Shown: one piece after another, positions 8,430 to 45,595 of the stretch
Layout: every line of letters begins with the position of its first letter
How positions within the stretch are numbered: the stretch's first letter is position 1
Sequence record: NC_006883.2
Length of the DNA: 64,000 bases
Direction: 5' to 3' (one strand)
Notes under the pieces: generated by a model
What the model was told of the DNA's origin: nothing
The model's input: only the letters and a program-made list of their open reading frames with translations
Databases searched by the model: none
Translations under genes and position numbers: made by a program

Positions 8430-9354
8430 TAGTAAAGTATTCGTTGCAGGGCATAAAGGTCTTGTAGGATCTGCGATATATCGTAATCTAGAATCTAAGC
8501 ATTATCAAAATATCTATTGGATAGGAAGAGATAACTGTGATCTAAGAAATAAGTTAGAGGTTGATGCATACTTTAAGCAATCGAAACCTGAGTATGTATT
8601 TCTTGCTGCTGCTAAGGTAGGTGGTATAGGTGGTAACTCTACCTATCCTGCCGATTTCATCTATGACAATCTGATGATTCAGACAAATGTTATTGATGCT
8701 GCATATCGTAATGGAGTTAAGAAACTATTGTTTCTAGGTTCATCTTGCATCTATCCTAAGTTTCCAAAGATACCTATTACAGAGGATCAGTTACTTGCTA
8801 GTCCTTTGGAAGAATCTAATAGTGCTTATGCAATTGCAAAGATAGCAGGTATGAGGATGTGTCAAGCATATCGTCAGCAGTATGGATTTAATGCAATATC
8901 ATTAATGCCTACTAATCTATACGGACCTAATGATAATTTTGATATTAATAATGGTCATGTATTACCATCACTCATCGCTAAGTTCCACGGATCACTTGAG
9001 AAGAGTGAGCACTGGGTTGTTAAGTTATGGGGTGATGGATCTCCGAAGAGAGAGTTCCTTCATGTTGATGATCTAGCAGAAGCTTGTGTTAAGTGTATGC
9101 AAGAGTATGATGATGAAGAACACATTAATGTTGGCACAGGTGAAGATGTAACTATCAAAGAACTTGCTGAAACTATTGTTGATGTGGTAGGATATAAGAA
9201 CCATTATGAATGGGATACCAGCAAACCAAATGGAACTCCACGCAAAGTATTGAATGTGGATAAGATGAAGTCACTTGGTTGGGAACCTAAGATTGGTCTT
9301 AGGGAAGGTATTGAATCTACTTATGAGTGGTATAAAGAAAATGTCAGAGACTAA
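8419..9354 (+). CDS. fcl: GDP-L-fucose synthase
   Basis: [40 protein letters not shown]; start at MDSNSK. Confidence 0.95.
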
Positions 9355-28873: not shown

Positions 28874-30727
28874 ATGGCGACTCCGTTTAGAATTAAACGA
28901 TCTGCCGTTCCTGGGAAAGGACCGTCAGTATCTGACCTACAATTAGGTGAATTAGCTCTTAATACTTATGATGCTGAACTGTATACACTACGTTCACGTC
29001 CTGGTATTGGCACGGAAGTTGTAAAAATCGGTGGTGCTGCAATAGAGAATGTTTTATATGTCAACAAAGACGGAGACGACGGAAATTCAGGATCAACCCC
29101 TGCCGACGCAAAAGCAACCCTCAAAGCAGCAGTTGGAATCGCATCAGAGGGAACTGCGATTAAAGTTGCTGCTGGAACTTATATAGAAAACAATCCTATA
29201 AAAGTACCGAAACAAGTTAGTATTGTTGGAGACAGTTTGAGAGAAGTAACTGTATCTCCTCAGAATGCTGATGAGGATATGTTCCACGTATCTCCTGGAG
29301 ATATGATAAGTGAAATAACATTTTCGGGGACAGTAGATAAAGGTGTTGCGGTAATAGCATTTGATCCTGATAAAATTCAATATGTTAATCAATCACCTTA
29401 CATAAGATTTTGTACCAATAGAGTTGCTAATAGTATTGGTTTAAAGGTAGATGGTAATAAAGCAGTAGGACCATTTAAGAGTATGGTTACAGACTCCTAC
29501 ACTCAGTATAATGTGAGTGGTATAGGGGTCTCTGTTAGTAATGAGGGATATGCTCAGATAGTTTCATTATTTACGATGAACCTTGATGAAGCAGTTGCTT
29601 GTCATTCTGGTGGGCAATGTGATGTAACAAACTCCAACTCTTCATTTGGTAATTATGGATTAGTTGCTGATGGTGTAGGAGCACTTCAATATACAGGAAC
29701 CATAGCATCAGAAGCTAAAGAGAATACTGATAAGTTTGAGGTTAATTTAAGTACATCTTCAGTTAATATTTCTAATTTTGTTTATGATAATGTAAGTGGA
29801 TTGGCAACAGTTACTACTAGTTCTGCTCATGGATTCAATGTTGGAATGGGAGTTACTATTGCAGGTGTTCAACTAACTTGCCCTTATGGAACAAAGACAT
29901 ATCCACATCAAGCTCCATATGTGTTTACAGTTGATACTGTTCCAAACACAACATCCTTTACTACAAATATAGGAATATCAACTCTTGCTCATTCTTATTT
30001 TGGTGGTGGTACTGCAAAGATAAATTTGATTAGACCTTTTGATGGTAAGGCTGTTTATTTTGAGAATGAATATAATACTATTGGAAAAATAAAACTTACT
30101 AATCCTGGTAGTGGATATAATACTGCACCTACCGTTACTATAGGAGATCCTAGTACTTCAAGTACTTTTGGTGTTACTGCGACAGCATTAGCAACTATAA
30201 TTGGTAGTAAGGTTGACGAGATTCAAATTCTCTCAAATGGTAGAGGATATACTTCTCTACCATCTGTTACAATTTCTGCTCCTGATGTTGGGATAAATAC
30301 AGCAACAGCTACCGTAGAATTACTTCCAACTTATTATACTGTTAAAGAATCAACTCCAATTTCTGCTGGAATTTGTACTATTACAATAAACGAAACCCTT
30401 CCATATTCTGTTGGTGTTGGAACAACAGTTCCTTTCTTTAGACAAAGTAGAATATTAGCATCCAGTCATTCCTTCCAATATATTGGAAGTGGTGTTGATC
30501 CTATTAATTCTCTTCCTTCTCGTGGAGGTGTTACTATACAGGAGAATGAAGTTGATAACCGTAATGGTGGATTAGTTGTATACACTAGTACTGATCAAGG
30601 TGGAAACTTTAGAATCGGTGATGGTGTTCAAATAGACCAAATTAGCGGAACTATTACTGGTACTTCTTATTCTAAGAGTTTATTTGCCAATGTTACACCA
30701 TTAATTCTAGCACTAGGAGGAGAATAA
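28874..30727 (+). CDS. Virion structural/tail-fibre protein (beta-helix-like)
   Basis: KVAAGTYIE..VSIVGDSLR and YTSTDQGGNFRIG motifs shared with 41615 protein. Confidence 0.75.
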   Translation: MATPFRIKRSAVPGKGPSVSDLQLGELALNTYDAELYTLRSRPGIGTEVVKIGGAAIENVLYVNKDGDDGNSGSTPADAKATLKAAVGIASEGTAIKVAAGTYIENNPIKVPKQVSIVGDSLREVTVSPQNADEDMFHVSPGDMISEITFSGTVDKGVAVIAFDPDKIQYVNQSPYIRFCTNRVANSIGLKVDGNKAVGPFKSMVTDSYTQYNVSGIGVSVSNEGYAQIVSLFTMNLDEAVACHSGGQCDVTNSNSSFGNYGLVADGVGALQYTGTIASEAKENTDKFEVNLSTSSVNISNFVYDNVSGLATVTTSSAHGFNVGMGVTIAGVQLTCPYGTKTYPHQAPYVFTVDTVPNTTSFTTNIGISTLAHSYFGGGTAKINLIRPFDGKAVYFENEYNTIGKIKLTNPGSGYNTAPTVTIGDPSTSSTFGVTATALATIIGSKVDEIQILSNGRGYTSLPSVTISAPDVGINTATATVELLPTYYTVKESTPISAGICTITINETLPYSVGVGTTVPFFRQSRILASSHSFQYIGSGVDPINSLPSRGGVTIQENEVDNRNGGLVVYTSTDQGGNFRIGDGVQIDQISGTITGTSYSKSLFANVTPLILALGGE

Positions 30728-31084: not shown

Positions 31085-34000
31085 ATGACAAGGTTTAGAA
31101 GCGGAAGAGTCCCCCATCAACATATCGGTATTAGTTCTTTTACCGAAGATAAGCTTGTCCTTGATGTAATAGGTAATGCCACGATTAGTGGTACTTTAAG
31201 TGTTGGTGTTGGAACTAATAATAGTGGTAATGGTAATATTAGTATTGGTGGAACTACTGGAACAATAGGTCAGTATTTAAAATCCACTGGTGTTGGAGTT
31301 ACTTGGGCTGATTTTGCTGATGTAAGAGATTCTCAATCCTTTGTTGCAACTGCAGGACAAACAACATTTGTATTTACTGCAAATGAACTTAATCAATATA
31401 ATCCAAATTTTATTGATGTATATGTTAATGGTGTTAAATTAATTAATAGTGAATATGATGCATTTAATGGATCTAATGTAGTTTTAAAATCTGCGTGTTT
31501 TGCTGGAGATATTGTTGAGTTAATTTCTTATAATACAAATCAAATTACTAATGGTATGGGTGGAAGTACCATTGGTATTAACACCTTTGCTACATCAACC
31601 TTTACTCATATAGGTGCAAGTGGGGTTGTAACTGCTACAACTTATTATGGTGATGGATCTAATTTAACAGGAGTAACAACTTCTTTACGTTCTGAGTATG
31701 CTGATGTATCTGGCATTTCAACTATCTCTCAAGGGTTAACTGGAACACCTGATATTGCAGTAAGAAATATTAATGTTGGTATTGCAACTTTTACTGGGAA
31801 CCTTGATGCTGTTGATGCTTCCTTTAGTGGAAATGTATCTATCGGTGGAACATTAACATACGAAGATGTAACAAATATAGATTCAGTTGGACTTATAACT
31901 GCTAGAAATGGTATAGATGTAACTGGTCCTATAAAGGGGTTTAGTTATACTCAATCACCATATAGTAATACTGTAGAAACAATAATAGTAAAAGTAGTAA
32001 CTAAAACTGCAGCACACCGATATAATGGTAATGGTAGTTCACTTGGATATACTTTTGATGGTGTCGAATCTCCTTTCCTCACGTTAACACCTGGTAAAAC
32101 TTATAGATTTGATCAATCAGATAATTCAAACCTTACACATCAATTAAGATTTTATTTAGATCCTGAGAAGGTAGTAGAATATCTTAGAACTCCTGGTGAG
32201 ATTGTTTATAGTGGAGCAGCAGGTTCTAATGGTTCTTATACTGAAATTCAAATACTTGATGATACCCCAACGGTCTTATATTATCAATGCGTAAACCATT
32301 CTTATATGGGTAATGCGGTTCAGGTTAATACTGGACACGCTATTGGATTTGCAACAGCAGCATCTATAGACACATCTGGTATTATAACTGCATTTAGATA
32401 TTATGGTGATGGAACATATCTAAGTGGAGTACAATCTCAACTTGTAATACAAGAAGAGGGTGGTGCTGTAGGTACTGCTGGAACAATTAATTTTGTTGGT
32501 GTTGGTGTAACAGCATCGGTTACTGATGATATTGCAACAATTCAAGTTGGTAATCATTTTGCTGTTACTGCTGGTATTGCTACTGTTGCTGAAGGGATAA
32601 CAGGATCTCCAAATGCTTCATTCTCTGGTATAACTGCAACAGGATTGCAGATGACTGGATTATGTACTGCTGGTACTTTTGTTGGTAACTTAGTTGGTGG
32701 TGTTGCTGGTGGTAATTGGGGTGGATATGATTCAACTGCTACTAATAATGTAAGTGCTGGTCAAAATGTAAGTGCTGGTCAATCAGTAACAGCAGGAAAT
32801 GGATTCTATGGTGATGGTTCTGGTATAACAAATCTTGTTACAACCTCAGATACCGCACCAAGTAATCCTACTGATGGTAATCTTTGGTGGAAATCTGATG
32901 AAGGTCAATTAAAAATATATTATCAAGATGCTGATAGTGCTCAATGGGTAGATGCAAATGCTAGTGGTGGAGCTGGTTCTTCTGGTGGATCTAGCGATCT
33001 ATTAAATGACACAACACCACAGTTGGGAGGAACACTAGATCTTAATAACCGTGATATTACTGGAACTGGTAATATATCCATTAATGGAGGTTTAACTTTA
33101 ATTGGTGGTACAAGTAATATAGGTAATGTATACTCGACTGGTATTGTAACTGCTTCAACTTTCTATGGAAACATTGTAGGTGATCTTAGTGGTACTTCTA
33201 CTGGTAATGTAACTGGAACTGTTAATGCTACTGGATTATCTACTTTTACTACCCTTGACATAAATGGTGATGTTAATGTTAGTGGTGCATCTACTATAAC
33301 TGGTGCTCTTGATGTAACTGATAGTGTTGATGCACATAGTATAAATGTTTCTACAGCAGTAACGGCAATATCATTCCACGGTGATGGACAATATTTAACT
33401 AACATATATTCTGCACCTCCACAAGGTATTAGTACAACTGGATATACTGGATTAACAAATTTATTCTGTGGTGGATACTTAGAGGTAGATGGTCAATCTA
33501 TCCTTGATGATGTTATTGTATCTGCTGCTGCAACTTTCCAAGGTGCTTTAAGTGCTAATACAGGACCAGTTACTCTTAACAATGCAACTATTAATGGTAC
33601 TACAAATGTAACTGGTCCATCTACGCTTACAACTGTTAATGTGGTTGGTCATTCAGAATTAGATAATGTAAATATTTCTGGTGTTGCTACTGCTATAGGT
33701 TTTGTTGGACCTTTGACTGGTAATGCTGCTACTGCTTCTAATTTAAGTGGATCCCCAAGTATTAGTGTTACGAATGTATCTGCTGGAATTATAACTGCAA
33801 CTAACGGTTATTATGGAAATGTAAATGTTAATAATCAAAATATTGAAGTTGGTAATTGTACCACTCAAGGAACCGATAATACTATAAAGGTAGGATCTAG
33901 TGCATTAGAAATTTTCCATAGACCTGCTGCATATGCAACTTATCTTCAAAATAAAGCAGATACAAACCTCTTTATAACTGGTAATGATGCTACTGGAACT

Positions 34001-34597
34001 TGGGGTAATATATTCATTAGACCTTATCTAAGTAACTTTAGTGGAGTTGCTTGTTGGTGGGGCGGTGCTACAGAATTATTCTATGGTAATAATAACACTA
34101 AGAGATTGGAGACGACTTCTGGTGGTGTTAATATTATTGGAACCCTGAGTAAGAGTGGTGGATCGTTTAAGATTCCTCATCCAGTATCAGGATTATCTAC
34201 CACTAAGCACTTAGTTCATTCTTTCCTTGAAGGTCCACAAATGGATCTTATCTATCGTGGTAAGGTTGATTTGGTTGGTGGTACTGCTACAGTTAATATT
34301 GATACCAAGGCTGGTATGACTGAAGGGACATTTGTTTTATTAAATAGAGATGTTCAATGTTTTACTACAAATGAAACTGGGTGGACAGCAGTGAAGGGTT
34401 CTGTAACTGGTAATGAGATTACTATAGTTGCACAAGATAATAGTTGTACTGATACTATTTCTTGGATGGTTGTTGGTGAAAGACAAGATGATACTGTTAA
34501 GGCATTAGATATGACTGATAGTGAGGGTAACTTAATTGTTGAACCAGATCAACCAGCAGCAGACACAAAACATGCTGATGTTCAAGCACAGTTATAG
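31085..34597 (+). CDS. Long tail-fibre protein with cupredoxin-like module
   Basis: 1170 aa, repeated GIVTAxxFYGDGS units, HQLRF...YYQCVNHSYMG. Confidence 0.8.
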   Translation: MTRFRSGRVPHQHIGISSFTEDKLVLDVIGNATISGTLSVGVGTNNSGNGNISIGGTTGTIGQYLKSTGVGVTWADFADVRDSQSFVATAGQTTFVFTANELNQYNPNFIDVYVNGVKLINSEYDAFNGSNVVLKSACFAGDIVELISYNTNQITNGMGGSTIGINTFATSTFTHIGASGVVTATTYYGDGSNLTGVTTSLRSEYADVSGISTISQGLTGTPDIAVRNINVGIATFTGNLDAVDASFSGNVSIGGTLTYEDVTNIDSVGLITARNGIDVTGPIKGFSYTQSPYSNTVETIIVKVVTKTAAHRYNGNGSSLGYTFDGVESPFLTLTPGKTYRFDQSDNSNLTHQLRFYLDPEKVVEYLRTPGEIVYSGAAGSNGSYTEIQILDDTPTVLYYQCVNHSYMGNAVQVNTGHAIGFATAASIDTSGIITAFRYYGDGTYLSGVQSQLVIQEEGGAVGTAGTINFVGVGVTASVTDDIATIQVGNHFAVTAGIATVAEGITGSPNASFSGITATGLQMTGLCTAGTFVGNLVGGVAGGNWGGYDSTATNNVSAGQNVSAGQSVTAGNGFYGDGSGITNLVTTSDTAPSNPTDGNLWWKSDEGQLKIYYQDADSAQWVDANASGGAGSSGGSSDLLNDTTPQLGGTLDLNNRDITGTGNISINGGLTLIGGTSNIGNVYSTGIVTASTFYGNIVGDLSGTSTGNVTGTVNATGLSTFTTLDINGDVNVSGASTITGALDVTDSVDAHSINVSTAVTAISFHGDGQYLTNIYSAPPQGISTTGYTGLTNLFCGGYLEVDGQSILDDVIVSAAATFQGALSANTGPVTLNNATINGTTNVTGPSTLTTVNVVGHSELDNVNISGVATAIGFVGPLTGNAATASNLSGSPSISVTNVSAGIITATNGYYGNVNVNNQNIEVGNCTTQGTDNTIKVGSSALEIFHRPAAYATYLQNKADTNLFITGNDATGTWGNIFIRPYLSNFSGVACWWGGATELFYGNNNTKRLETTSGGVNIIGTLSKSGGSFKIPHPVSGLSTTKHLVHSFLEGPQMDLIYRGKVDLVGGTATVNIDTKAGMTEGTFVLLNRDVQCFTTNETGWTAVKGSVTGNEITIVAQDNSCTDTISWMVVGERQDDTVKALDMTDSEGNLIVEPDQPAADTKHADVQAQL

Positions 34598-34607
34598 AGG
34601 TAAATAA

Positions 34608-35372
34608 ATGGCTATTAATTTTCCAAGCAATCCTAGCGTAAACGATACTCACACTGCAAATAATATTACATGGAAGTGGGATGGAACAACTTGGAAAGTT
34701 GGCATAACCACTTTTAATGCTGCTACTATTCCAGGTATTAGCACATCAGGGACATCATATTTTTATGATTTAGATGTTGCTCATAATGTATCAGTGGGTT
34801 CTTCTATAACTGCTGGTACTTATTTTGGTGATGGTGCTGGTTTAACAAATGTTGCTGGTACTACTGGTCCTGCTGGTCCTACTGGTTCTCCTGGTCCTGC
34901 TGGTCCTGCTGGTGGAACTGGTCCACAAGGTTCACCTGGTCCTGCTGGTTCGCCTGGTGCAACTGGTCCTGTTGGAAATCCTGGTCCTACTGGTCCTTCT
35001 GGTGGTCCTGTTGGTCCTCCAGGTCCTCCTGGTCCTGCTGGTGGTGGAACGGGTGGAACTATTGGTAGTGGATCCTTTAATGCAGTTGCAGGTCAAACAG
35101 TTCAGTTGGATAGTGTTACACAGGCTCATTTACTATCTGATTATGATATGTATTTCAGTCATAGTGCTGGTACACAATCTCAAAAAGTTACAGTATTAAA
35201 TGCTGGTGGAACTACTGCACACTCTCAACAATTTGGTATTATGTTTAATAATAATTTACTTGTTTCTGTTGGATCATCTATTCATAATAGTAATTTAACT
35301 GTAAATGTTACACCAGAGCCAGGAATAACTGGCACAGTAACGTATAAGTTCCTTAGAACGGAGGTATCATGA
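34608..35372 (+). CDS. Collagen-like fibre protein
   Basis: [17 protein letters not shown] head; ~20 Gly-X-Y triplets. Confidence 0.85.
34857..35042 (+). repeat. Collagen Gly-X-Y coding repeat
   Basis: Repeated ggtcct(g/a)ct units. Confidence 0.9.
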
Positions 35373-37204
35373 TTAGTACAACATTAGATTCAAATACTGG
35401 AAGAGTTCTTGTTGTTCATAGCACTTCTGCTCAACCATATACTGTTTGTGTAAAGGATGCTGCGGATTGGGCAGAGATTCATAATTATATAATCAATGAA
35501 AATAATATAGATGATATTCCAAATAGGAAGATTGATTGTACATCAGAGATGCAGTGTTCTCCTAAGAGAGGTGTATATGAAATCTCTCCTGCAGAGGCAG
35601 ATGTATTAAAGAATCACCCTAAGATTGAATGGGTATTGAGGTCTGCTTTATATAATGAGTATGAATTAGAACAGAGAAAATATGATCAAGAGTTTGATCA
35701 ACACATTACTACTAATAGATTTAAATATGATGTAACTAATAGAAGGTTTTCAACCAGTGGTGGAGGTAATCCAGGAAACACTTTAGATTTTACTCAGTGG
35801 GGATTATATCGTCACTCTCATAGGAGTAATAAGTTTATTAATGCTACAACTATAACTGAAGATCTGCAGTATACTTTATCGGGGAAAAATGTTGATGTTG
35901 TTATTATGGATACTGGAGTTCGTTGGAATCACCCAGAATTTTTAAAACCAGGATACACATCTGTTGCTAATAGTTTAGCTTGTGAAACTGAGAGTAGAGT
36001 TAGAGATATATTAATTCATGGTGAATCTGAATATGGAATCAATTGGTCTGCTAATGGATTATCTGCACCTGGATCAGGAGCATTTGGAAATTATAATGTT
36101 GCTGGTGCTTTATTGATGCATAATAATGGTAATCAAAATAATAGTTTAGCAAACCATCATGGTTCTCACTGTGCTGGAACTGCTGCTGGTAATCAGTTTG
36201 GTCATGCTTTTGAAGCAAATATATGGTCTATTGCTTGTGTTGATAGAAGTGATCTTGGATGGTCAAATCCTTCTGATGGATTTGATTATATTAAAGTTTG
36301 GCATAAGAATAAACCAATTAATCCATTAACTGGTAGAAGAAATCCTACAGTTGTTAATGGTAGTTGGGGAAATAGGCAATTTTGGAATTATAATAATGCT
36401 CATATTGCAACCTTTAGAGGAACTGCTTATAACGAGACTCAAATAAATTCTACTACTGCACCTGCAGTACATTATATGTCTTATGGTTTCAGTACTTATA
36501 ATGAGTTTACTGCTAAACAAACATATGGTCAATCAGAAGCAGATGAATTATTTGATGATCCTGATTGTAAGGATATAGTATTTTGTTTTGCTGCAGGTAA
36601 TTCTAATGATAAACAGGAGATTCCTTCAGGGAGAGATTATCATAATGAAATGACTTCTGCTACTTTTTATTATAGTTCTGGGTATGAACATTATTATAAT
36701 AGATCTGGAACACCTGCTATATCTGGGGAAGGAAGAGATGATGCTGCGATAGTTGTTGGATCTATTGATGCTACAAGACAGACAACTGGAGGGCAAGAAA
36801 GATGTTCCTCTTTCAGTAATAGAGGTCCAAGAATTGATGTTTGGGCTGGAGGATCTATTATCTTAAGTCCATATGCAACTGGATATGCTGATCCAAGAAA
36901 TAATAATTTTTATAATTATGCTATAAGTGGAACTAGTATGGCAACACCTCAAGTATGTGGTGTGATGGCGTTGTATTTGGAATCTCAACCACAGGCAACT
37001 AGAGCAGATGCTAGAAAATGGTTGTATAATCATGGATCTTGTGAAGTTGCTGACACTGAATATTATGATCCATACCAAAGTAATGGTGATACTGATTCAA
37101 ACTACTGGGGTAACACTTATAGTTTGAAGAGTTCTCCTCGTAGGATTTTATTTAATCCTTTCGCTAATAATGGTGAATCATCCATTACTGGCATTTCATT
37201 CTAA
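35369..37204 (+). CDS. Subtilisin-like serine protease (S8)
   Basis: Triad: VIMDTG, HHGSHCAGTAAG, SGTSMATPQV; oxyanion FAAGN. Confidence 0.92.
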   Translation: MISTTLDSNTGRVLVVHSTSAQPYTVCVKDAADWAEIHNYIINENNIDDIPNRKIDCTSEMQCSPKRGVYEISPAEADVLKNHPKIEWVLRSALYNEYELEQRKYDQEFDQHITTNRFKYDVTNRRFSTSGGGNPGNTLDFTQWGLYRHSHRSNKFINATTITEDLQYTLSGKNVDVVIMDTGVRWNHPEFLKPGYTSVANSLACETESRVRDILIHGESEYGINWSANGLSAPGSGAFGNYNVAGALLMHNNGNQNNSLANHHGSHCAGTAAGNQFGHAFEANIWSIACVDRSDLGWSNPSDGFDYIKVWHKNKPINPLTGRRNPTVVNGSWGNRQFWNYNNAHIATFRGTAYNETQINSTTAPAVHYMSYGFSTYNEFTAKQTYGQSEADELFDDPDCKDIVFCFAAGNSNDKQEIPSGRDYHNEMTSATFYYSSGYEHYYNRSGTPAISGEGRDDAAIVVGSIDATRQTTGGQERCSSFSNRGPRIDVWAGGSIILSPYATGYADPRNNNFYNYAISGTSMATPQVCGVMALYLESQPQATRADARKWLYNHGSCEVADTEYYDPYQSNGDTDSNYWGNTYSLKSSPRRILFNPFANNGESSITGISF

Positions 37205-37224
37205 ATATTTAAAAAATAAAGCAA

Positions 37225-40200
37225 ATGGCAGATAAAGGATTTGGCGTAAAGAAAATTAATTTGATTGGGGCATCTGGTACTCCAACACTTACAAGTCCAA
37301 ATAATCTAAATTTAAACGCAGTAAACGTTGCTATAAGTACTGATGTATCAATCGGTGGAACTTGTACTGCATATGAATTTAGTGGTGCTACTGCTAGTTG
37401 GATGGTTGGTAATGATGGAACAGATAATTACACTTTTATAGGATCAGGTATTTCAACTCAAGTAAATGATCCAGAATTAAATCTTTATAAAGGACAAAAA
37501 TATATTTTTCATAATAGATCTTCAGGGCATCCATTTAGGATTCAAATCACTCCTAATGGGTCTGTAGGTGGACAATATAATACTGGTGTGACCAATAATG
37601 ATGGTTCCGCACAAACAGATATTATATTTGAAGTTCCACAAGATGCACCTGATACTCTATATTATCAGTGTACATCGCATACTGGAATGGGTGGTAAGAT
37701 TAATATAGTAGGTGTAGCTTCTGATACTGATACAACTTTAGATGGAAAGACTAGTGGTACAAATGTTTACTTAGGAACTACTGCTGGTGCAGCAAATACA
37801 ACAAGTCCTGGTAATGAAGTTGGTATTGGTTACAGTGCATTAATGCAATCTACTGGCCGTGATAGTACTGGTATTGGAGCATACGCTTTACAAAATGTTA
37901 ATGGATATTATAATACTGCAGTTGGATCTTACGCTGGATTTAGTACTACTGCTGGCATTAGCACTGCATCAGATAATAGTTTCTTTGGATATGCTTCTGG
38001 GTATCAGAATAATGGAGATGGTAATTCTGGAATTGGTCTTCGTACTCTCTTTAGAAATATTGGAACAGAGAATACTGCATTGGGTATGTATTCTTTACAG
38101 GATAATATAAATGGAAGTTATAATGTTGGAATGGGTGTTTATGCACAATACGCTAATGTGAGTGGATCAAACAATACTTCGGCTGGTTGGGCTGCATTAT
38201 CCTCTAATGTGAGTGGTAATTTTAATTTGGTTTTAGGGTCGAATGCATTAAGAACAATTACCTCTGGACTTTCAAATGCTGCTGTAGGTTCTGATGCAGG
38301 AAGGTATTTAACTGGTGGATCTAGTTATAATACATTAATTGGTAATTATGCTGTTGGTATTGGTACTACTGGAAGTTATGTCACTGCCGTTGGAGCAAGT
38401 GCATTAGCTAAGAATATAGCAAATTTTAACACAGCAACAGGTGCTTATGCATCGCTACAGAATACAACAGGAGCTTTGAATTGTTCTTTCGGTGCTTATG
38501 CAGGAGAAAATACCACGACAGGAAGTTGGAATAATGCGTTTGGATATGCTGCTTTAAATGATAATATAACAGGTGTATCTAATAATGTAATGGGATATTT
38601 CGCACTTGGAGTTTCTACTGATGCTAGTTATAATGTTGCAATCGGATATGAGAGTTTAAAATCTCTAAAAACTGGTGATTATAATACTGCCGTAGGACAT
38701 AGGACACTTGATCTTCAAACTAGTGGAAGTTATCAAACTGCTCTTGGTGGATTTGCATTAGGTATGAGTACTACGACCATATCAAATACTGCTATTGGAT
38801 ATGGTAGTCAACTTCAGACTATAGAAGGTAATTATAATACTGCGGTTGGAAATAATAGTTTACGGGAAAATATTGAGGGTGATAGTAATGTTGCTGTGGG
38901 AGATAACGCAATTGGTATTGGAACGACTGGAAGTTATAATGTTGCAGTTGGTGCTTATGCATTAGAAAAAAATAATAGTAACTATAGTACTGCAGTAGGT
39001 TATAAAGCATTACGAAACATTACGAAATCTCAAAGTACTGCAGTAGGTTATAACGCTGCTGGTATAGCTACGGAAGCTTGGAACGTATGTGCATTTGGAT
39101 TTCAAACACTATTTCACTTGACAACAGGTGATAATAATTGTGCTTATGGACATATGAGTCAGTTTGATACCACAACAGGACAATTTAATTCGTCCTTTGG
39201 TTCGTTATCAATGAGAGATAACACCATAGGTGGTCAGAATTGTGCTTTTGGTGAACAGGCATTAAAATCAAGTGGAATTGGTTCTGATAATACTGCAGTG
39301 GGATATAAAGCACTGTTGAGCATGAATAACGGTTCAAATACTAATACTGCGGTTGGTAGTTTTTGTCTTAGTAATACAGGTACAGTTGCACCATTTGCTA
39401 TAGCTGTTGTTAATTCTGGAGCAAGTTCATATACTATGAGTGGTACTGATAGAAATGGATCAGTTTCTGGTGGAGCCAACCCAACTATTACTCTTAATAT
39501 AAATGACACTGCTACAATTAGTATAAGTGCTATTGGACATCCATTCTGGATTCAGTCAAGTTCTGGTGGATATAATGCTTCAAATGTTCTTGGAACAAAC
39601 GAGGGTGTAACTAATAATGGGCAAGATAATGCAAATGTCGTTTTTAAGCCTAAAACTGCTGGTACTTATTACTATGTTTGCCAAAATCATGCGGCTATGC
39701 AGGGGCAAATTGTTGTTCAGGACCCACCTAATCCAAGCACTGCTGTGGGATATGCTGCGTTATACAACCAAACAGTTGGGGGTAATAACGTAGCTGTTGG
39801 TAAAAATACAATGTTCCTTAACCTTTCAGGTTATAACAATACTTCGATAGGTCAACAATCACATTATGGTAATAGTGGATCAACTCATTCATCATACGAC
39901 TGTGTCTCTGTGGGACATATGGCACATTATTCCCTTGATACAGGATATTCAAATACTGCTGTGGGTAAATGGGCTGGATATTTTGTTAATACTGGTAGTA
40001 ATAATACCTGTATAGGGTATCAGTCAGGAACTGGATCATCACCATCAGGTTCTGTTAATAGTAATAGTAATGTTATTTGTTTAGGAGATAATTCTGTTCA
40101 AAATATATATTGTAATGATACATCAATTAGTTCTTCGGATCTGAGAGATAAGGCTGATATACAAAATTTTGATCATGGATTAGCGTGGATTAAGGAGTTA

Positions 40201-40509
40201 AGACCTGTTACTTATCGTTGGGATAAGCGTTCTTGGTATACTGAAGATCCAGCTACTAAAGGAACACCTGATGGAAGTAAGAAGACTAATCGTATTCATG
40301 TAGGTTTCATAGCACAAGAAGCAATTGAAGTTGAGAAAAAATTTGGTTATGGAGATAAAAAGGATAATATGCTTATCACTAACCAAGATGAGGATGATGC
40401 TGATCCTTCATATGGTATGAAGTATGAAAGATTAATCCCAGTTCTTGTAAATGCAATCAAGGAATTGTCTAGTGAGATAGACACTTTGAAGGCAAAAATA
40501 GCAGAATAG
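37225..40509 (+). CDS. Tail fibre with YadA-like repeats, two cupredoxin-like modules and C-terminal S74 chaperone
   Basis: Many NTAVGYxAL repeats; SSDLRDKADI...LRPVTYRW...GFIAQE...YERLIPVLVNAIKEL. Confidence 0.88.
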   Translation: MADKGFGVKKINLIGASGTPTLTSPNNLNLNAVNVAISTDVSIGGTCTAYEFSGATASWMVGNDGTDNYTFIGSGISTQVNDPELNLYKGQKYIFHNRSSGHPFRIQITPNGSVGGQYNTGVTNNDGSAQTDIIFEVPQDAPDTLYYQCTSHTGMGGKINIVGVASDTDTTLDGKTSGTNVYLGTTAGAANTTSPGNEVGIGYSALMQSTGRDSTGIGAYALQNVNGYYNTAVGSYAGFSTTAGISTASDNSFFGYASGYQNNGDGNSGIGLRTLFRNIGTENTALGMYSLQDNINGSYNVGMGVYAQYANVSGSNNTSAGWAALSSNVSGNFNLVLGSNALRTITSGLSNAAVGSDAGRYLTGGSSYNTLIGNYAVGIGTTGSYVTAVGASALAKNIANFNTATGAYASLQNTTGALNCSFGAYAGENTTTGSWNNAFGYAALNDNITGVSNNVMGYFALGVSTDASYNVAIGYESLKSLKTGDYNTAVGHRTLDLQTSGSYQTALGGFALGMSTTTISNTAIGYGSQLQTIEGNYNTAVGNNSLRENIEGDSNVAVGDNAIGIGTTGSYNVAVGAYALEKNNSNYSTAVGYKALRNITKSQSTAVGYNAAGIATEAWNVCAFGFQTLFHLTTGDNNCAYGHMSQFDTTTGQFNSSFGSLSMRDNTIGGQNCAFGEQALKSSGIGSDNTAVGYKALLSMNNGSNTNTAVGSFCLSNTGTVAPFAIAVVNSGASSYTMSGTDRNGSVSGGANPTITLNINDTATISISAIGHPFWIQSSSGGYNASNVLGTNEGVTNNGQDNANVVFKPKTAGTYYYVCQNHAAMQGQIVVQDPPNPSTAVGYAALYNQTVGGNNVAVGKNTMFLNLSGYNNTSIGQQSHYGNSGSTHSSYDCVSVGHMAHYSLDTGYSNTAVGKWAGYFVNTGSNNTCIGYQSGTGSSPSGSVNSNSNVICLGDNSVQNIYCNDTSISSSDLRDKADIQNFDHGLAWIKELRPVTYRWDKRSWYTEDPATKGTPDGSKKTNRIHVGFIAQEAIEVEKKFGYGDKKDNMLITNQDEDDADPSYGMKYERLIPVLVNAIKELSSEIDTLKAKIAE

Positions 40510-41614: not shown

Positions 41615-44600
41615 ATGGCTGAATTTAGACTTGGCAGATTAAAATTTAACTGGCGTAGTGACTGGACTATAAGTACTGCGTATGTTATAGATGACATCAT
41701 AAAGTATGGTGCAAATACTTATGTTTGTAAGAAGAATCACACTTCTGCTGGTGCTGAAGAATCTTTTTATAGCACAGATCTAACACTTAATTGGTCCTTA
41801 CATACCGAAGGAATTGTTAATAAGGGAAGTTGGGCAGCAAATTATTGGTATAAAGTAAACGATATATTCAAATACGGTAATACTCAATATAGAGTAACTA
41901 CTGGATTTACTTCTGGTGCTACTTTTGATGAAGCTGCTACTACTACAAATGTAGTTGAGTATTTACAATCATTTAATTATGAAGATACTTGGAGTAATTC
42001 AACACAGTATCAGGATGGAGATGTTGTAACTTACGGTGGATACACTTACGTTGCAAAGAGCGTTAATACAAATAAAGCACCTTCATATAATTTAACGAAT
42101 GATTGGGATATTATAACTACAGGATTTAGTGTAGTTGGTTATTATTCTACAACAACAGATTATAAGCAAGGTGATGTGGTTCAATATGGTGGATACACCT
42201 ATGTTGCAATTACAACTAGTACAAATACTATCCCAACAACACCAGCAAATTGGACCTTAGTTACTAAAGGTGTTTCTTGGAAAGGTAACTGGGATTCTAC
42301 TGTAAAGTATGAATTAGGAGATGCTGTAAAGAGATTAAGTAATAGTTATATTGGTGTTGCTACTGTTGGTAGTTTAAACGAAGATCCTTCAACTGACGGT
42401 ACAAGTACTTATTGGAGTATGTTGGCTGAGGGTGCTGCCAACAATGTGATGACCACTCAAGGTGATATGGTCTATTACACCACTGGTTCTGCTAGATTAC
42501 CTAAAGGAACTAATGGTCAAGTACTCGCTATGAGTTCTGGTGGTGTACCTAATTGGGAATCTAATAGTGTAACACATCCAGTTTTCTATGTAACAGAAGA
42601 AGGAAGTGATACTAATGATGGTTCAAATATCAGTAGAGCATTTGCCTCAGTAAGACATGCTTGTGCAAAAGCAGCTGAAACAGGAAATCCTTGTTCAGTT
42701 TATGTAAAAGCAGGAACATATTCAGAAACACTTCCAATTGTAGTGCCACCATTTGTATCTATTGTTGGAGATAACTTAAGAACATCTAGGGTTAAACCAG
42801 GTGTTCATTATGCACATACCTTTATAAGTGGTCTTACTGGTAGTATTACGGCAGATTCTGGTGGTCCTTTTACTGCTGGTAGTGGAACAACCTACGATTC
42901 TGCAACAGGAGACCTTGTATTAGAAATTGGAACACATAGTTTAACTACTTCTAATACTATTGGTATTAATGGTAATTCATTAACATTTACTTGTTCACAG
43001 GATAGTCATGCTACTCAGCATACTTATCCAAGACCAAAGGATCCAGTTTACAATAAAACTGATATAGCAATTATTGCAACAACTGGAACTACAATTACAG
43101 TTAGAGTTGGTAAAGGAAATGCATCTAGGCATCAAGATCTAGTATTAGCATCTGCTCCTTCTTCTGTTTCATATGGTTCTTCAATCTTTAATGGTGCTGG
43201 AACTAAATGTGCTGTTATCTTAGATTCAGATTACGCTGAGAAGAAGATACAAATCAGATGGCTTTCTGGTGGAGAATGGACAACATCAGACGAGTGGGAA
43301 AATGGTGGAACAGATATAGGTATTACTTCGGTTACTACAAGACCGAATGAAGAATCAACAATGTTTATGTTAAGCAACGCAACGATGCTTAAAGACTTGT
43401 TGATGGAAGATATGACTGGTTTCAGTCCAGCAGGTATCGTTACAACTATAAGTTGTAGTATTGCTGGATCAAAAGTAACTGGTAGTGAGTTATTCCCAGA
43501 CTTAGTTGGTACAACTGTAACTGGTTCTGGTGTTTCAACTGGAACAAAGGTTAGTGGATTTATTGATGCACAAACATTAGAAGTTGATATAGTTCAAAAT
43601 CTTGGTGCAACTGATCTTACATTTACAGCACAACAGTATGATCCTAATAACGCACATATTAAAGGAACCTTTTGTGCTTTAAACCCAGAAAGTAGAGTTA
43701 TTAAATCACCATACGTATCAAACTGTTCTGCAAAATCAGTTAGAGGTATTGGTGCAGTCGTAGATGGTGGGGTTCATAGACAATTTGTTGATGGATCAGC
43801 AACACCTTCTAACAAATCTATCGTGTTTGACTCATTTACAAATATTCACGATGAAGGAATGGCATTCTGGATCACAGACGGTGCTGTGGCAGAAACAGTT
43901 TCTTGTTTCACATACTATAACCATATAAGTTATGCTGCTACTCGTGGTGGAAGACTTAGATCTCTTGTTGGAAATAGTTCTTGGGGTAAGTATGGTGTTG
44001 TAAGTTCTGGATTCAGTCCACTTGAAAAAGCAAGAGAAGGTGAGATTGAAGGATTAGTTCTTCAATATGATGTAGATAGTATGAGTGGATCTGGTTTCCA
44101 AGTTGGAGAAAGAATTAGAGGTAACACTTCTGGTGCTTGGGGTTATATTAACTCAGTACAAGGAACTACTCAAGAGAAAATATATTATTCAGTAATTAGT
44201 GAAGGTCCAGTTGGAGTTGGAACAGGATTTGGACCTGGTGAAACCATTACTGCTATGACTTCAGGAACAACTGCTCCACTTCTTAATAATACAAGTGCAA
44301 ACGAGGGTCAAGCTGGTCGTATTCTTGTTCTTAGTGGATTAGGAACATCACCAACCCTTGAAGTTAATGGTAGTATTGAATTTATTACTGGATTGGGTAA
44401 CGGTGGATATAATAGCGATAATATTACTGGTGCTGATCCATTTACCTTTGTGATCTCTGGTGTGAGTCAGACAGGTCCTACTGGTAAGGGTAATGTACAG
44501 ATTGACAGAGCACAGTGGTCTACTACTGGTGCAGCACATACAGGTGGAAGTACAACGTTTGTTAAGTATCCAGTTAATATTGGTGCTTCATTTACTCTGC

Positions 44601-45595
44601 TAACTCCTGCTGCTGCTGGCGATACTACTCTCAGTACGAGTACTATTAGTGGATTCAATCCAGGTGAATATTGTTTATCACCAACTAATGAACTTTGTAA
44701 GATTGTTAGTTTCCCAACTGCAAACTCTATGAGTGTTCAGAGAGCACAAGATGGTGCTGGTGCTGCTGTTGCATATAGTATTGGTGACATCTTTACTTCA
44801 ATTGGAACAACTAGTTTTGTTACTTCAGCAGAAGTTAATAAAGATTTTACTGGTGTTTCTACTGACTTTAGAGCAACGATTTCAAATAGATTTGAGGATG
44901 CTGTTGGTGCTTATATGAAGATTGATGATGAATTTACAAAAGTAACAGGTGTTACTACTGATACTTACGGTACTACTACAGTAACTCTTGTTGAAGAAAA
45001 GGCTGCTAAATCCTTTGATGAACAGGATATTAAGATCCGCTACATCTTCAGTCAGGCAAGATTAACTGGACATGACTTCTTACAAGTAGGAACTGGTGGA
45101 ACATACACAACTAATTGGCCTGATGTTCCTTCACAAGATCCAGTTCAGACACAGGAAATTACAGAAGACTTCCCAGGAAGGGTATTCTATGTTTCTACTG
45201 ATGAACAAGGTAACTTTAGGGTTGGTAAGTACTTCCGTGTTAACCAGGCAACTGGTGCTGCAACGTTGAATGCTAACAGTTTCGATCTATCTGGTTTGAC
45301 CTCAATTCGATTGGGTTCAATCGGTGCTCAGTTAGGTGCTCAAGTTAATGAGTTCTCAACTGATGGAACTATGGCACAAAATAGTAATGAGAAAGTGCCA
45401 ACACAGGCTGCGGTTAGAACTTATGTTGCTACTAGAGATGCAGAGCATCTTGTAATGGCACAAAACGCAGCAAACTTGGGTATAGCAACTGCATTAGCAC
45501 ACGCTAACGCTGGTATAGCAACTTTAAGAACTGATGCAAACACTGAGTTCAGATCAGGAGTTCAGGTATCTGAATTCTTTGTTGGGCAAATCTAA
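41615..45595 (+). CDS. Large virion structural/tail protein with aromatic (CBM5/12-like) repeats
   Basis: 1326 aa; WKGNWDSTVKYELGD-type repeats; paralogous motifs to 28874. Confidence 0.8.
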   Translation: MAEFRLGRLKFNWRSDWTISTAYVIDDIIKYGANTYVCKKNHTSAGAEESFYSTDLTLNWSLHTEGIVNKGSWAANYWYKVNDIFKYGNTQYRVTTGFTSGATFDEAATTTNVVEYLQSFNYEDTWSNSTQYQDGDVVTYGGYTYVAKSVNTNKAPSYNLTNDWDIITTGFSVVGYYSTTTDYKQGDVVQYGGYTYVAITTSTNTIPTTPANWTLVTKGVSWKGNWDSTVKYELGDAVKRLSNSYIGVATVGSLNEDPSTDGTSTYWSMLAEGAANNVMTTQGDMVYYTTGSARLPKGTNGQVLAMSSGGVPNWESNSVTHPVFYVTEEGSDTNDGSNISRAFASVRHACAKAAETGNPCSVYVKAGTYSETLPIVVPPFVSIVGDNLRTSRVKPGVHYAHTFISGLTGSITADSGGPFTAGSGTTYDSATGDLVLEIGTHSLTTSNTIGINGNSLTFTCSQDSHATQHTYPRPKDPVYNKTDIAIIATTGTTITVRVGKGNASRHQDLVLASAPSSVSYGSSIFNGAGTKCAVILDSDYAEKKIQIRWLSGGEWTTSDEWENGGTDIGITSVTTRPNEESTMFMLSNATMLKDLLMEDMTGFSPAGIVTTISCSIAGSKVTGSELFPDLVGTTVTGSGVSTGTKVSGFIDAQTLEVDIVQNLGATDLTFTAQQYDPNNAHIKGTFCALNPESRVIKSPYVSNCSAKSVRGIGAVVDGGVHRQFVDGSATPSNKSIVFDSFTNIHDEGMAFWITDGAVAETVSCFTYYNHISYAATRGGRLRSLVGNSSWGKYGVVSSGFSPLEKAREGEIEGLVLQYDVDSMSGSGFQVGERIRGNTSGAWGYINSVQGTTQEKIYYSVISEGPVGVGTGFGPGETITAMTSGTTAPLLNNTSANEGQAGRILVLSGLGTSPTLEVNGSIEFITGLGNGGYNSDNITGADPFTFVISGVSQTGPTGKGNVQIDRAQWSTTGAAHTGGSTTFVKYPVNIGASFTLLTPAAAGDTTLSTSTISGFNPGEYCLSPTNELCKIVSFPTANSMSVQRAQDGAGAAVAYSIGDIFTSIGTTSFVTSAEVNKDFTGVSTDFRATISNRFEDAVGAYMKIDDEFTKVTGVTTDTYGTTTVTLVEEKAAKSFDEQDIKIRYIFSQARLTGHDFLQVGTGGTYTTNWPDVPSQDPVQTQEITEDFPGRVFYVSTDEQGNFRVGKYFRVNQATGAATLNANSFDLSGLTSIRLGSIGAQLGAQVNEFSTDGTMAQNSNEKVPTQAAVRTYVATRDAEHLVMAQNAANLGIATALAHANAGIATLRTDANTEFRSGVQVSEFFVGQI

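Follow-up and report, generated by a model that had tools for sequence, protein, structure and literature searches.

Predicted metal-binding cupredoxin modules in tail-fibre-type proteins of cyanophage P-SSM2 and in structural proteins of other aquatic phages

Two tail-fibre-type genes of cyanophage P-SSM2 lie in the 64,000-nucleotide stretch of sequence record NC_006883.2 that was analysed here (hereafter, the window), and together they encode three short segments in which an upstream His is followed by a C-x2-H-x2-M loop, the ligand set of a type-1 (blue) copper site. This arrangement raises the question of whether the segments are authentic cupredoxins, whether they hold a metal, and what purpose such a domain could have on a virus particle. 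In this report, we present sequence comparisons, a predicted structure, and a survey of relatives that lead us to favour the view that they are metal-binding cupredoxin modules acting as accessory domains of the virion, a reading to which we assign a probability of roughly 0.6. A window position equals the record position minus 186000, such that the region 31085-40509 is record 217085-226509. The features on which the argument depends are as follows; the limits of the modules are those of their hidden-Markov-model (HMM) envelopes.

31085-34597 (record 217085-220597), + strand: open reading frame (ORF) A, PSSM2_295, 1170 amino acids, "tail fiber protein" in RefSeq, bearing module A
31940-32365, + strand: module A, about 110 amino acids; His352, Cys402, His405 and Met408, with codons at 32138, 32288, 32297 and 32306
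37225-40509, + strand: ORF B, PSSM2_298, 1094 amino acids, "tail spike protein" in RefSeq, bearing modules B1 and B2
37333-37749, + strand: module B1; His102, Cys149, His152 and Met155, with codons at 37528, 37669, 37678 and 37687
39322-39759, + strand: module B2, inserted in the repeat shaft of ORF B; His772, Cys819, His822 and Met825, with codons at 39538, 39679, 39688 and 39697

Translation and a motif scan reproduced exactly the residues and coordinates that an earlier note on this window had given for all three modules. No other occurrence of C-x2-H-x(2-4)-M is found in the window among open frames of at least 80 amino acids on either strand, and the family HMM likewise reports exactly three copies there. 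When the 110 long open frames were shuffled, a mean of 0.21 C-x2-H-x2-M matches resulted, and three or more were seen in 0.05% of shuffles. The His-to-Cys spacings are 47, 47 and 50 residues, and all four ligand residues are invariant columns in an alignment of the modules, which are mutually only 20-25% identical. Given three matches against 0.21 expected, and given the homology among the modules, a chance motif is ruled out. The low mutual identity, together with the fact that each module has separate relatives, also rules out a recent internal duplication in P-SSM2. Indeed, the nearest relatives of B1 are gp9-like connectors, those of B2 are S8-protease-like proteins, and those of module A are pelagiphage and OM43-phage fibres and gp7; by this measure, the three modules of the window represent three different sub-lineages of one family. 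A fourth intact module is detected by the family HMM elsewhere in the P-SSM2 genome, in the collagen-like fibre PSSM2_028 (NC_006883.2 25481-25852).

Several lines of evidence connect these segments to the cupredoxin fold. Within the full protein, B2 matches the Pfam model Copper-bind (PF00127) at 23.3 bits (gathering score 21.2), and a phmmer search of the Protein Data Bank (PDB) with B2 returns the cupredoxin 4hcf (E 1e-3). Its alignment with rusticyanin spans the whole domain and places the His, Cys, His and Met on rusticyanin positions 85, 138, 143 and 148, the ligand loop of B2 being two plus two residues shorter; PDB titles ("Met148Leu" and "His143Met") name two of these four positions as ligands. 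A profile of B1 relatives finds only cupredoxins in the PDB, and variants carrying an engineered short "amicyanin ligand loop" come first. The loop of the modules is of this shortest type, and the name used in those entries bears out the earlier description of the site as amicyanin-type. By their scores against the NCBIfam equivalogs, the modules are not members of either the amicyanin or the rusticyanin group, loop length being the only common ground: B2 attains 20.9 bits against a cut-off of 110.2 for amicyanin (TIGR02657) and 21.3 bits against 146.7 for rusticyanin (TIGR03095), and modules A and B1 have no match to either model.

The predicted structure of B1 agrees with these matches. An AlphaFold2 model made from a 38-sequence alignment has nine strands, with a predicted local distance difference test (pLDDT) score of 91.6 and a predicted template-modelling (pTM) score of 0.85. 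In this model, the Cys ends the strand 94-99, the Met precedes the strand 106-112, and His52 (module numbering) precedes the strand 54-57, which are the canonical ligand locations. A Foldseek search of the PDB was the check that the earlier note had proposed, and its outcome supports the fold: all of the best 50 matches are copper-protein entries with cupredoxin-fold domains (E 4e-5 to 1e-3), with rusticyanin (E 3.9e-5) at the head, followed by nitrite reductase, plastocyanin, AcoP and amicyanin. Module A is the most divergent of the three, and a profile of its relatives matches the profile of B1 relatives with 98.2% probability (E 3e-14), the four ligand columns being aligned. Further, the family HMM recovers the P-SSM2 plastocyanin gene petE at 1e-4, and petE was not in the set from which that HMM was built. 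The Copper-bind match, the coincidence with the rusticyanin ligands, the B1 model and the profile homology lead us to conclude that the three segments are genuine cupredoxin-fold domains.

Is the site itself maintained? A complete H/C/H/M set is present in 67 of the 68 distinct relatives of B1 (38-90% identity) taken from IMG/VR, and the sole exception has lost three of the residues together. The family at large is sizeable; a profile of the three modules retrieves 8,521 cluster representatives at E<=1e-3 from among 1.84 billion. We retrieved 206 diverse proteins that hold 384 copies of the module (1-8 per protein), 359 of which have residues at all four ligand columns. The set is complete in 321 of these 359 copies, but this count, like the other conservation counts given here, comes from the best-scoring matches of ligand-containing profiles to related sequences; it therefore overstates independence and is to be read as a description and not as a probability. 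When the roughly 110 columns are ranked by conservation, all four ligand columns fall within the top 8. The earlier note had taken the retained ligands as a sign of selection and had looked to homologues as the place where that idea could fail; on both scores the wider family sides with it. A further trait, which sets the modules apart from the single-domain blue copper proteins, is a Pro next to the first His on its C-terminal side; it is present in two of the three modules of the window and in 88% of the copies in the family.

The manner in which ligands are lost is also informative. In 328 copies the Cys and the second His occur together, and in 27 neither is found; no copy lacks the Cys while keeping the second His, and only 4 keep the Cys without the second His. 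Because loss is thus all-or-none, the site behaves as a functional unit. The axial Met persists in 95% of copies, a level equal to that of the His and Cys ligands, and where a single ligand is replaced, the change seen most often is Met to Phe (4 copies). In terms of coordination chemistry, a Met kept at this level with Phe as its substitute is the pattern of a copper site rather than of a zinc site, since selection for a thioether ligand is not usual at zinc sites. We consider it very probable that the cupredoxin is genuine and that its metal site is under selection. Metal binding, probably of copper, is strongly implied by these sequence patterns.

These data bear directly on a rival explanation, namely that the module is a beta-sandwich adhesin or spacer whose site contains zinc or nothing at all, the ligands serving folding stability only with whatever metal the cytoplasm provides; the cupredoxin fold would then be a decoration comparable to the Ig-like and carbohydrate-binding ones of other phages. 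Such a view would account for assembly in the cytoplasm without a signal peptide, for the way in which the module is freely shuffled, to the ends or the interior of many different structural proteins, for its co-occurrence with collagen, Big, cadherin-like and carbohydrate-binding-module (CBM) domains, and for the existence of copies without ligands. However, it does not readily explain a Met that is conserved level with the His and Cys ligands, nor the all-or-none pattern of ligand loss. On balance, we find it a rather improbable account.

The family extends well beyond the two fibres of P-SSM2. The earlier note had missed that it is very large and shuffled, and that the modules are not peculiar to these proteins. 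Searches with tblastn of 50,697 phage records matched 352 with B1, 48 with B2 and 46 with module A. The matched phages are all aquatic; none comes from an enteric, soil or clinical host. The most frequent setting is the C-terminus of the cyanophage gp9-like baseplate connector, where the module is present on a full-length connector in 277 phage records, with intact ligands verified in ACG-2014d, P-SSM4 and Syn9. The module also lies within gp7 of P-HM1, at the start of a protein of the podovirus P-GSP1, and at the end of S8-protease-like proteins of S-H9-1 and many metagenomic proteins, which are fusions of an S8 domain and a cupredoxin. Intact modules occur in fibre ORFs of the Pelagibacter phages Mosig and Baldr and of the Methylophilales phage Melnitz-2, and a lake actinophage has one in a hypothetical protein beside collagen-like genes; cultured phages of SAR11 and OM43 are thus among the matches. 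Judging from these architectures, the modules are shuffled as accessory domains among fibres, the gp9-like connector, gp7 and S8-protease-like structural proteins of aquatic phages.

Two contigs deserve comment with regard to where the family resides. NZGL01000008.1, filed as a "Gammaproteobacteria MAG" (metagenome-assembled genome, MAG), carries a Gp23 capsid protein, a heme oxygenase, an S8-like protein and two module-bearing ORFs; on this gene content, it is T4-like cyanophage DNA binned into the MAG. QCCH01000014.1, a contig from a Prochlorococcus single cell, probably derives from a phage that had infected that cell. When 185,579 species genomes were scanned with a single, very narrow peptide pattern, only 5 loci emerged, and at least one of them is phage DNA binned into a MAG; the scan therefore says little about how common the family is in cells.

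The host distribution is pertinent to a proposal in the earlier note, that the modules mimic plastocyanin and so imitate the photosynthetic electron carrier of the host. The phage does encode petE, which the module HMM matches weakly, and some annotation pipelines label relatives of the modules "plastocyanin". However, intact modules are found on the fibres of phages that infect non-photosynthetic SAR11, OM43 and actinobacterial hosts, the loop has x2/x2 spacing as opposed to x2/x4 in the phage's own plastocyanin, and plastocyanin acts in the thylakoid lumen, beyond the reach of a fibre. We therefore reject a photosynthesis-specific role on the basis of host distribution, and we give plastocyanin mimicry next to no credence.

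Restriction to aquatic phages is also what one might expect if the modules serve in copper capture or receptor mimicry, with the virion either exploiting a copper-uptake receptor of the host or forming part of the copper ligand pool of seawater. There is a precedent in the iron held at His-x-His sites of T4 gp37 and in the attendant "Ferrojan horse" hypothesis (cited in PMC11705849). Arguing against a copper version of this idea, a type-1 site buries its metal and is poor at handing it over. The bulk copper scavenging that the earlier note had entertained would be negligible by a rough estimate: on the assumption that a virion has a maximum of about 72 sites and that a litre contains some 1e10 viruses, the sites would amount to no more than about 1 pM, compared with about 1 nM dissolved copper. 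Nor are we aware of any specific copper receptor in the outer membrane that these hosts share. Copper capture or receptor mimicry thus seems very unlikely.

A redox function is a further possibility. Under this hypothesis, the type-1 sites would swap electrons with the host surface or the surrounding water, and a change in redox state or occupancy would trigger adsorption or the firing of the baseplate. Electron-transfer cupredoxins retain the full type-1 set with its axial Met, as the modules do, and the module sits on the gp9-like connector; in T4, such a connector relays the fibre signal to the baseplate. Cellular relatives are fused to redox modules as well. A Rhodothermales MAG protein (contig nucleotides 3700-5724) combines an intact module with a pyrroloquinoline quinone (PQQ)-dependent glucose/sorbosone dehydrogenase domain and a type IX secretion system (T9SS) sorting signal; its cupredoxin is plausibly the enzyme's built-in electron acceptor. 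This fusion indicates that the family includes members in redox contexts, and other members carry DOMON or globin domains. Nevertheless, we see no candidate for a redox partner protein in the fibre gene run, a suitable partner would have to be shared on the surfaces of such dissimilar hosts as cyanobacteria, SAR11, OM43 and actinobacteria, and copies without ligands persist. Although possible, a redox role for the virion modules therefore strikes us as unlikely. The most far-reaching form of the idea, in which working type-1 copper centres on fibres and connectors gate host recognition by oxidation state or occupancy in phages of cyanobacteria, SAR11, OM43 and freshwater actinobacteria, we regard as distinctly doubtful.

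A number of observations weigh against the view that the modules are metal-binding accessory domains of the virion, in addition to the overstated independence of the ligand counts. Some pertain to the fold. Only B2 passes the Copper-bind threshold, and it does so narrowly; scanned alone it scores 20.8 bits, below the 21.2 required, B1 reaches 12.7 bits, and module A has no match. The likeness of B1 to solved cupredoxins is moderate (TM 0.45-0.6; root-mean-square deviation 4-6 A), and the model of module A is weaker than that of B1 (pLDDT 78.6), its best PDB folds being rusticyanin and pseudoazurin at E of about 3e-3. Others concern the metal. Its presence in the modules, and a position of the upstream His close to the loop in space, are predictions from sequence and from the strand order of the B1 model. 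About 10% of copies have no ligands yet persist, nearly always with an intact copy alongside (in 18 of 20 proteins), from which it follows that the fold has some value without metal. The proteins are expected to fold in the cytoplasm and have no signal peptide; hence, the site could hold zinc or be empty. Finally, some concern the virion. Table S8 of PMC3037559 lists the gp9-like cluster T4-GC398 as detected in purified virions of S-SM1, but that the S-SM1 gp9 bears the module is deduced from cluster membership and length. The supplementary tables of that paper have no entry for T4-GC 290 or 293, and we found no virion proteome of P-SSM2 in the literature.

With these reservations, we can outline how metal-binding accessory modules might function. 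Each module would bind a single metal ion. Copper is the most probable candidate, given that the thioether Met is as well conserved as the His and Cys ligands. The timing of metal acquisition presents a difficulty. Cupredoxins are normally loaded with copper outside the cytoplasm, virion proteins assemble within it, and the N-termini of ORFs A and B, as read from their sequences, have no hydrophobic leader or signal peptide. Since the virion is built where cupredoxins are not normally metallated, the metal would most likely be acquired late, at or after lysis, and loading is likely to be late or incomplete. We judge the chance that copper is present in the mature virion to be a little better than even. 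The holo-domain would form a rigid, exposed knob on the trimeric fibre; bound metal would lock the fold so that it endures in water for long periods, and the knob would present a docking face to the host envelope. We prefer such a knob because the module is shuffled in the way of virion decorations, at termini and as a shaft insertion, on phages of very different hosts, and because a minority of copies survive without ligands. That a stabilised knob or adhesin is the main role is nonetheless a tentative proposal, which we hold at less than even odds.

The location of the modules on fibres, which the earlier note had assumed, is borne out by homology. ORF A matches the tail-fibre family PHROG 30742 (E 5.7e-52), and ORF B matches the tail-spike family PHROG 4636 (E 2.9e-213) and ends in a Peptidase_S74 domain, a mark of self-cleaving trimeric fibres and spikes. 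The genes around them are of the same kind:

28874-30727, + strand: fibre ORF, part of the same-strand run of fibre-type genes
34608-35372, + strand: collagen-like ORF of 254 amino acids, between the two fibres
35369-37204, + strand: PSSM2_297, subtilase (Peptidase_S8)-like ORF of 611 amino acids (Pfam PF00082, E 1.3e-28)
40135-40344, + strand: Peptidase_S74 intramolecular chaperone domain at the C-terminus of ORF B (amino acids 971-1040; Pfam PF13884, E 1.7e-12)
41615-45595, + strand: PSSM2_301, fibre protein with three CBM_5_12 modules at its start (E 8.4e-12)

The collagen-like ORF has a sub-threshold match to Pfam Collagen (E 3.5e-4) and matches PHROG 1658 and several tail-fibre PHROGs. 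The fibre genes are closely packed on a single strand: neighbours either overlap slightly or are separated by a few to about 50 bases. Taking together PHROGs 30742, 4636 and 677, the S74 domain, and the fibre, collagen-like and CBM-bearing neighbours, ORFs A and B are by homology tail fibre- or spike-type proteins. A search of the whole window for the T4 late-promoter octamer found 5 occurrences compared with 11 expected by chance, none of them near or upstream of the fibre ORFs, and is uninformative on expression. PSSM2_301 also has a weak, sub-threshold match to the N-terminal domain of glyoxal oxidase, a member of the copper radical oxidase family. In phage P-SSM5 (HQ632825.1, 99.8% identical), this region is annotated with 5 coding sequences instead of 4, the counterpart of ORF B appearing as two proteins, of 590 and 463 amino acids.

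The S8-like gene is situated within the tail-fibre gene run, and the regions of its Asp, His and Ser motifs align with aqualysin. In other cyanophages, the S8 protein itself ends in a module; in P-SSM2, a module opens the next gene, ORF B. This arrangement suggests that the cupredoxin domain has moved across the boundary between the S8 gene and ORF B.

Recognition of the module also revises an existing annotation. The 2005 genome paper described orf298 (ORF B) as a proximal-fibre analogue, its N-terminus resembling the gp9 homologue of P-SSM4 (PMC1079782). We find that this likeness is confined to the shared cupredoxin module B1 (PHROG 677 positions 282-410), which is outside the gp9 core. The basis of the proximal-fibre call is thus the shared module only.

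The earlier note knew of no described function for such domains, and our full-text literature searches likewise returned no account of phage structural proteins with cupredoxin or blue-copper domains. Nor did they find a functional study of this family, which, at 8,521 cluster representatives, constitutes a considerable gap in both phage biology and bioinorganic chemistry. Annotation pipelines do already attach the tag "plastocyanin" to some relatives. Cupredoxins are textbook soluble electron carriers, and the known viral examples are free auxiliary metabolic genes; as standard, virion-borne parts they would be new. If copper is bound, the stability of the particle or its recognition of a host could depend on a trace metal. 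Prochlorococcus is unusually copper-sensitive, and phage infection would be linked to the copper chemistry of the ocean, as the Ferrojan horse idea linked it to that of iron.

How, then, do the modules compare with known systems? They most resemble the blue copper proteins (rusticyanin, amicyanin, plastocyanin, pseudoazurin and AcoP), which provide all of the best PDB matches by sequence and by fold. Both have a Greek-key beta-sandwich in which a Cys-His-Met loop lies between the last two strands and an upstream His precedes this loop by some 47-50 residues. In contrast, blue copper proteins are free, soluble carriers made with a signal peptide, whereas the modules are parts of virion proteins of about 1100 amino acids that are made in the cytoplasm, and no redox partner is known for them. 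The commonest Pfam model among sampled family members (18 of 79; best E 3.6e-18) is PF25489, the "At5g54830-like domain", named for a plant cytochrome b561/DOMON protein. Two MAG relatives exceed its gathering score (31.5 and 32.8 bits versus 27), and the window modules fall below it (17.7 bits for module A and 17.5 for B1). We found no functional study of At5g54830; the papers in which our searches located it name it only within gene lists.

Like the petE/pcy auxiliary metabolic genes, the modules are virus-encoded cupredoxins with a type-1 site. P-SSM2 has its own petE (NC_006883.2 181103-181447), and plastocyanin genes occur in viruses of ammonia-oxidising archaea (PMC12998224). These viral genes encode free-standing, host-like electron carriers that act in the infected cell, whereas the modules are parts of structural proteins and only remotely related to them; the x2/x4 ligand loop of the P-SSM2 plastocyanin is longer than the x2/x2 loop of the modules.

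The iron at the His-x-His sites of T4 gp37, together with the Ferrojan horse hypothesis (cited in PMC11705849), offers a parallel of another sort: a transition metal in a phage fibre, with a proposed meaning in a metal-poor ocean (PMC11705849), although the metal of the modules is predicted. In gp37, the iron lies on the trimer axis, where three chains contribute the His pairs that coordinate it, and its role is purely structural; in the modules, each chain would have a self-contained, redox-type site in a globular domain. Ig-like, FN3 and carbohydrate-binding accessory domains are small beta-sandwich modules that are shuffled among the structural proteins of tailed phages, much as the cupredoxin modules appear to be. 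Those domains have no conserved metal site, whereas the cupredoxin modules have a predicted one.

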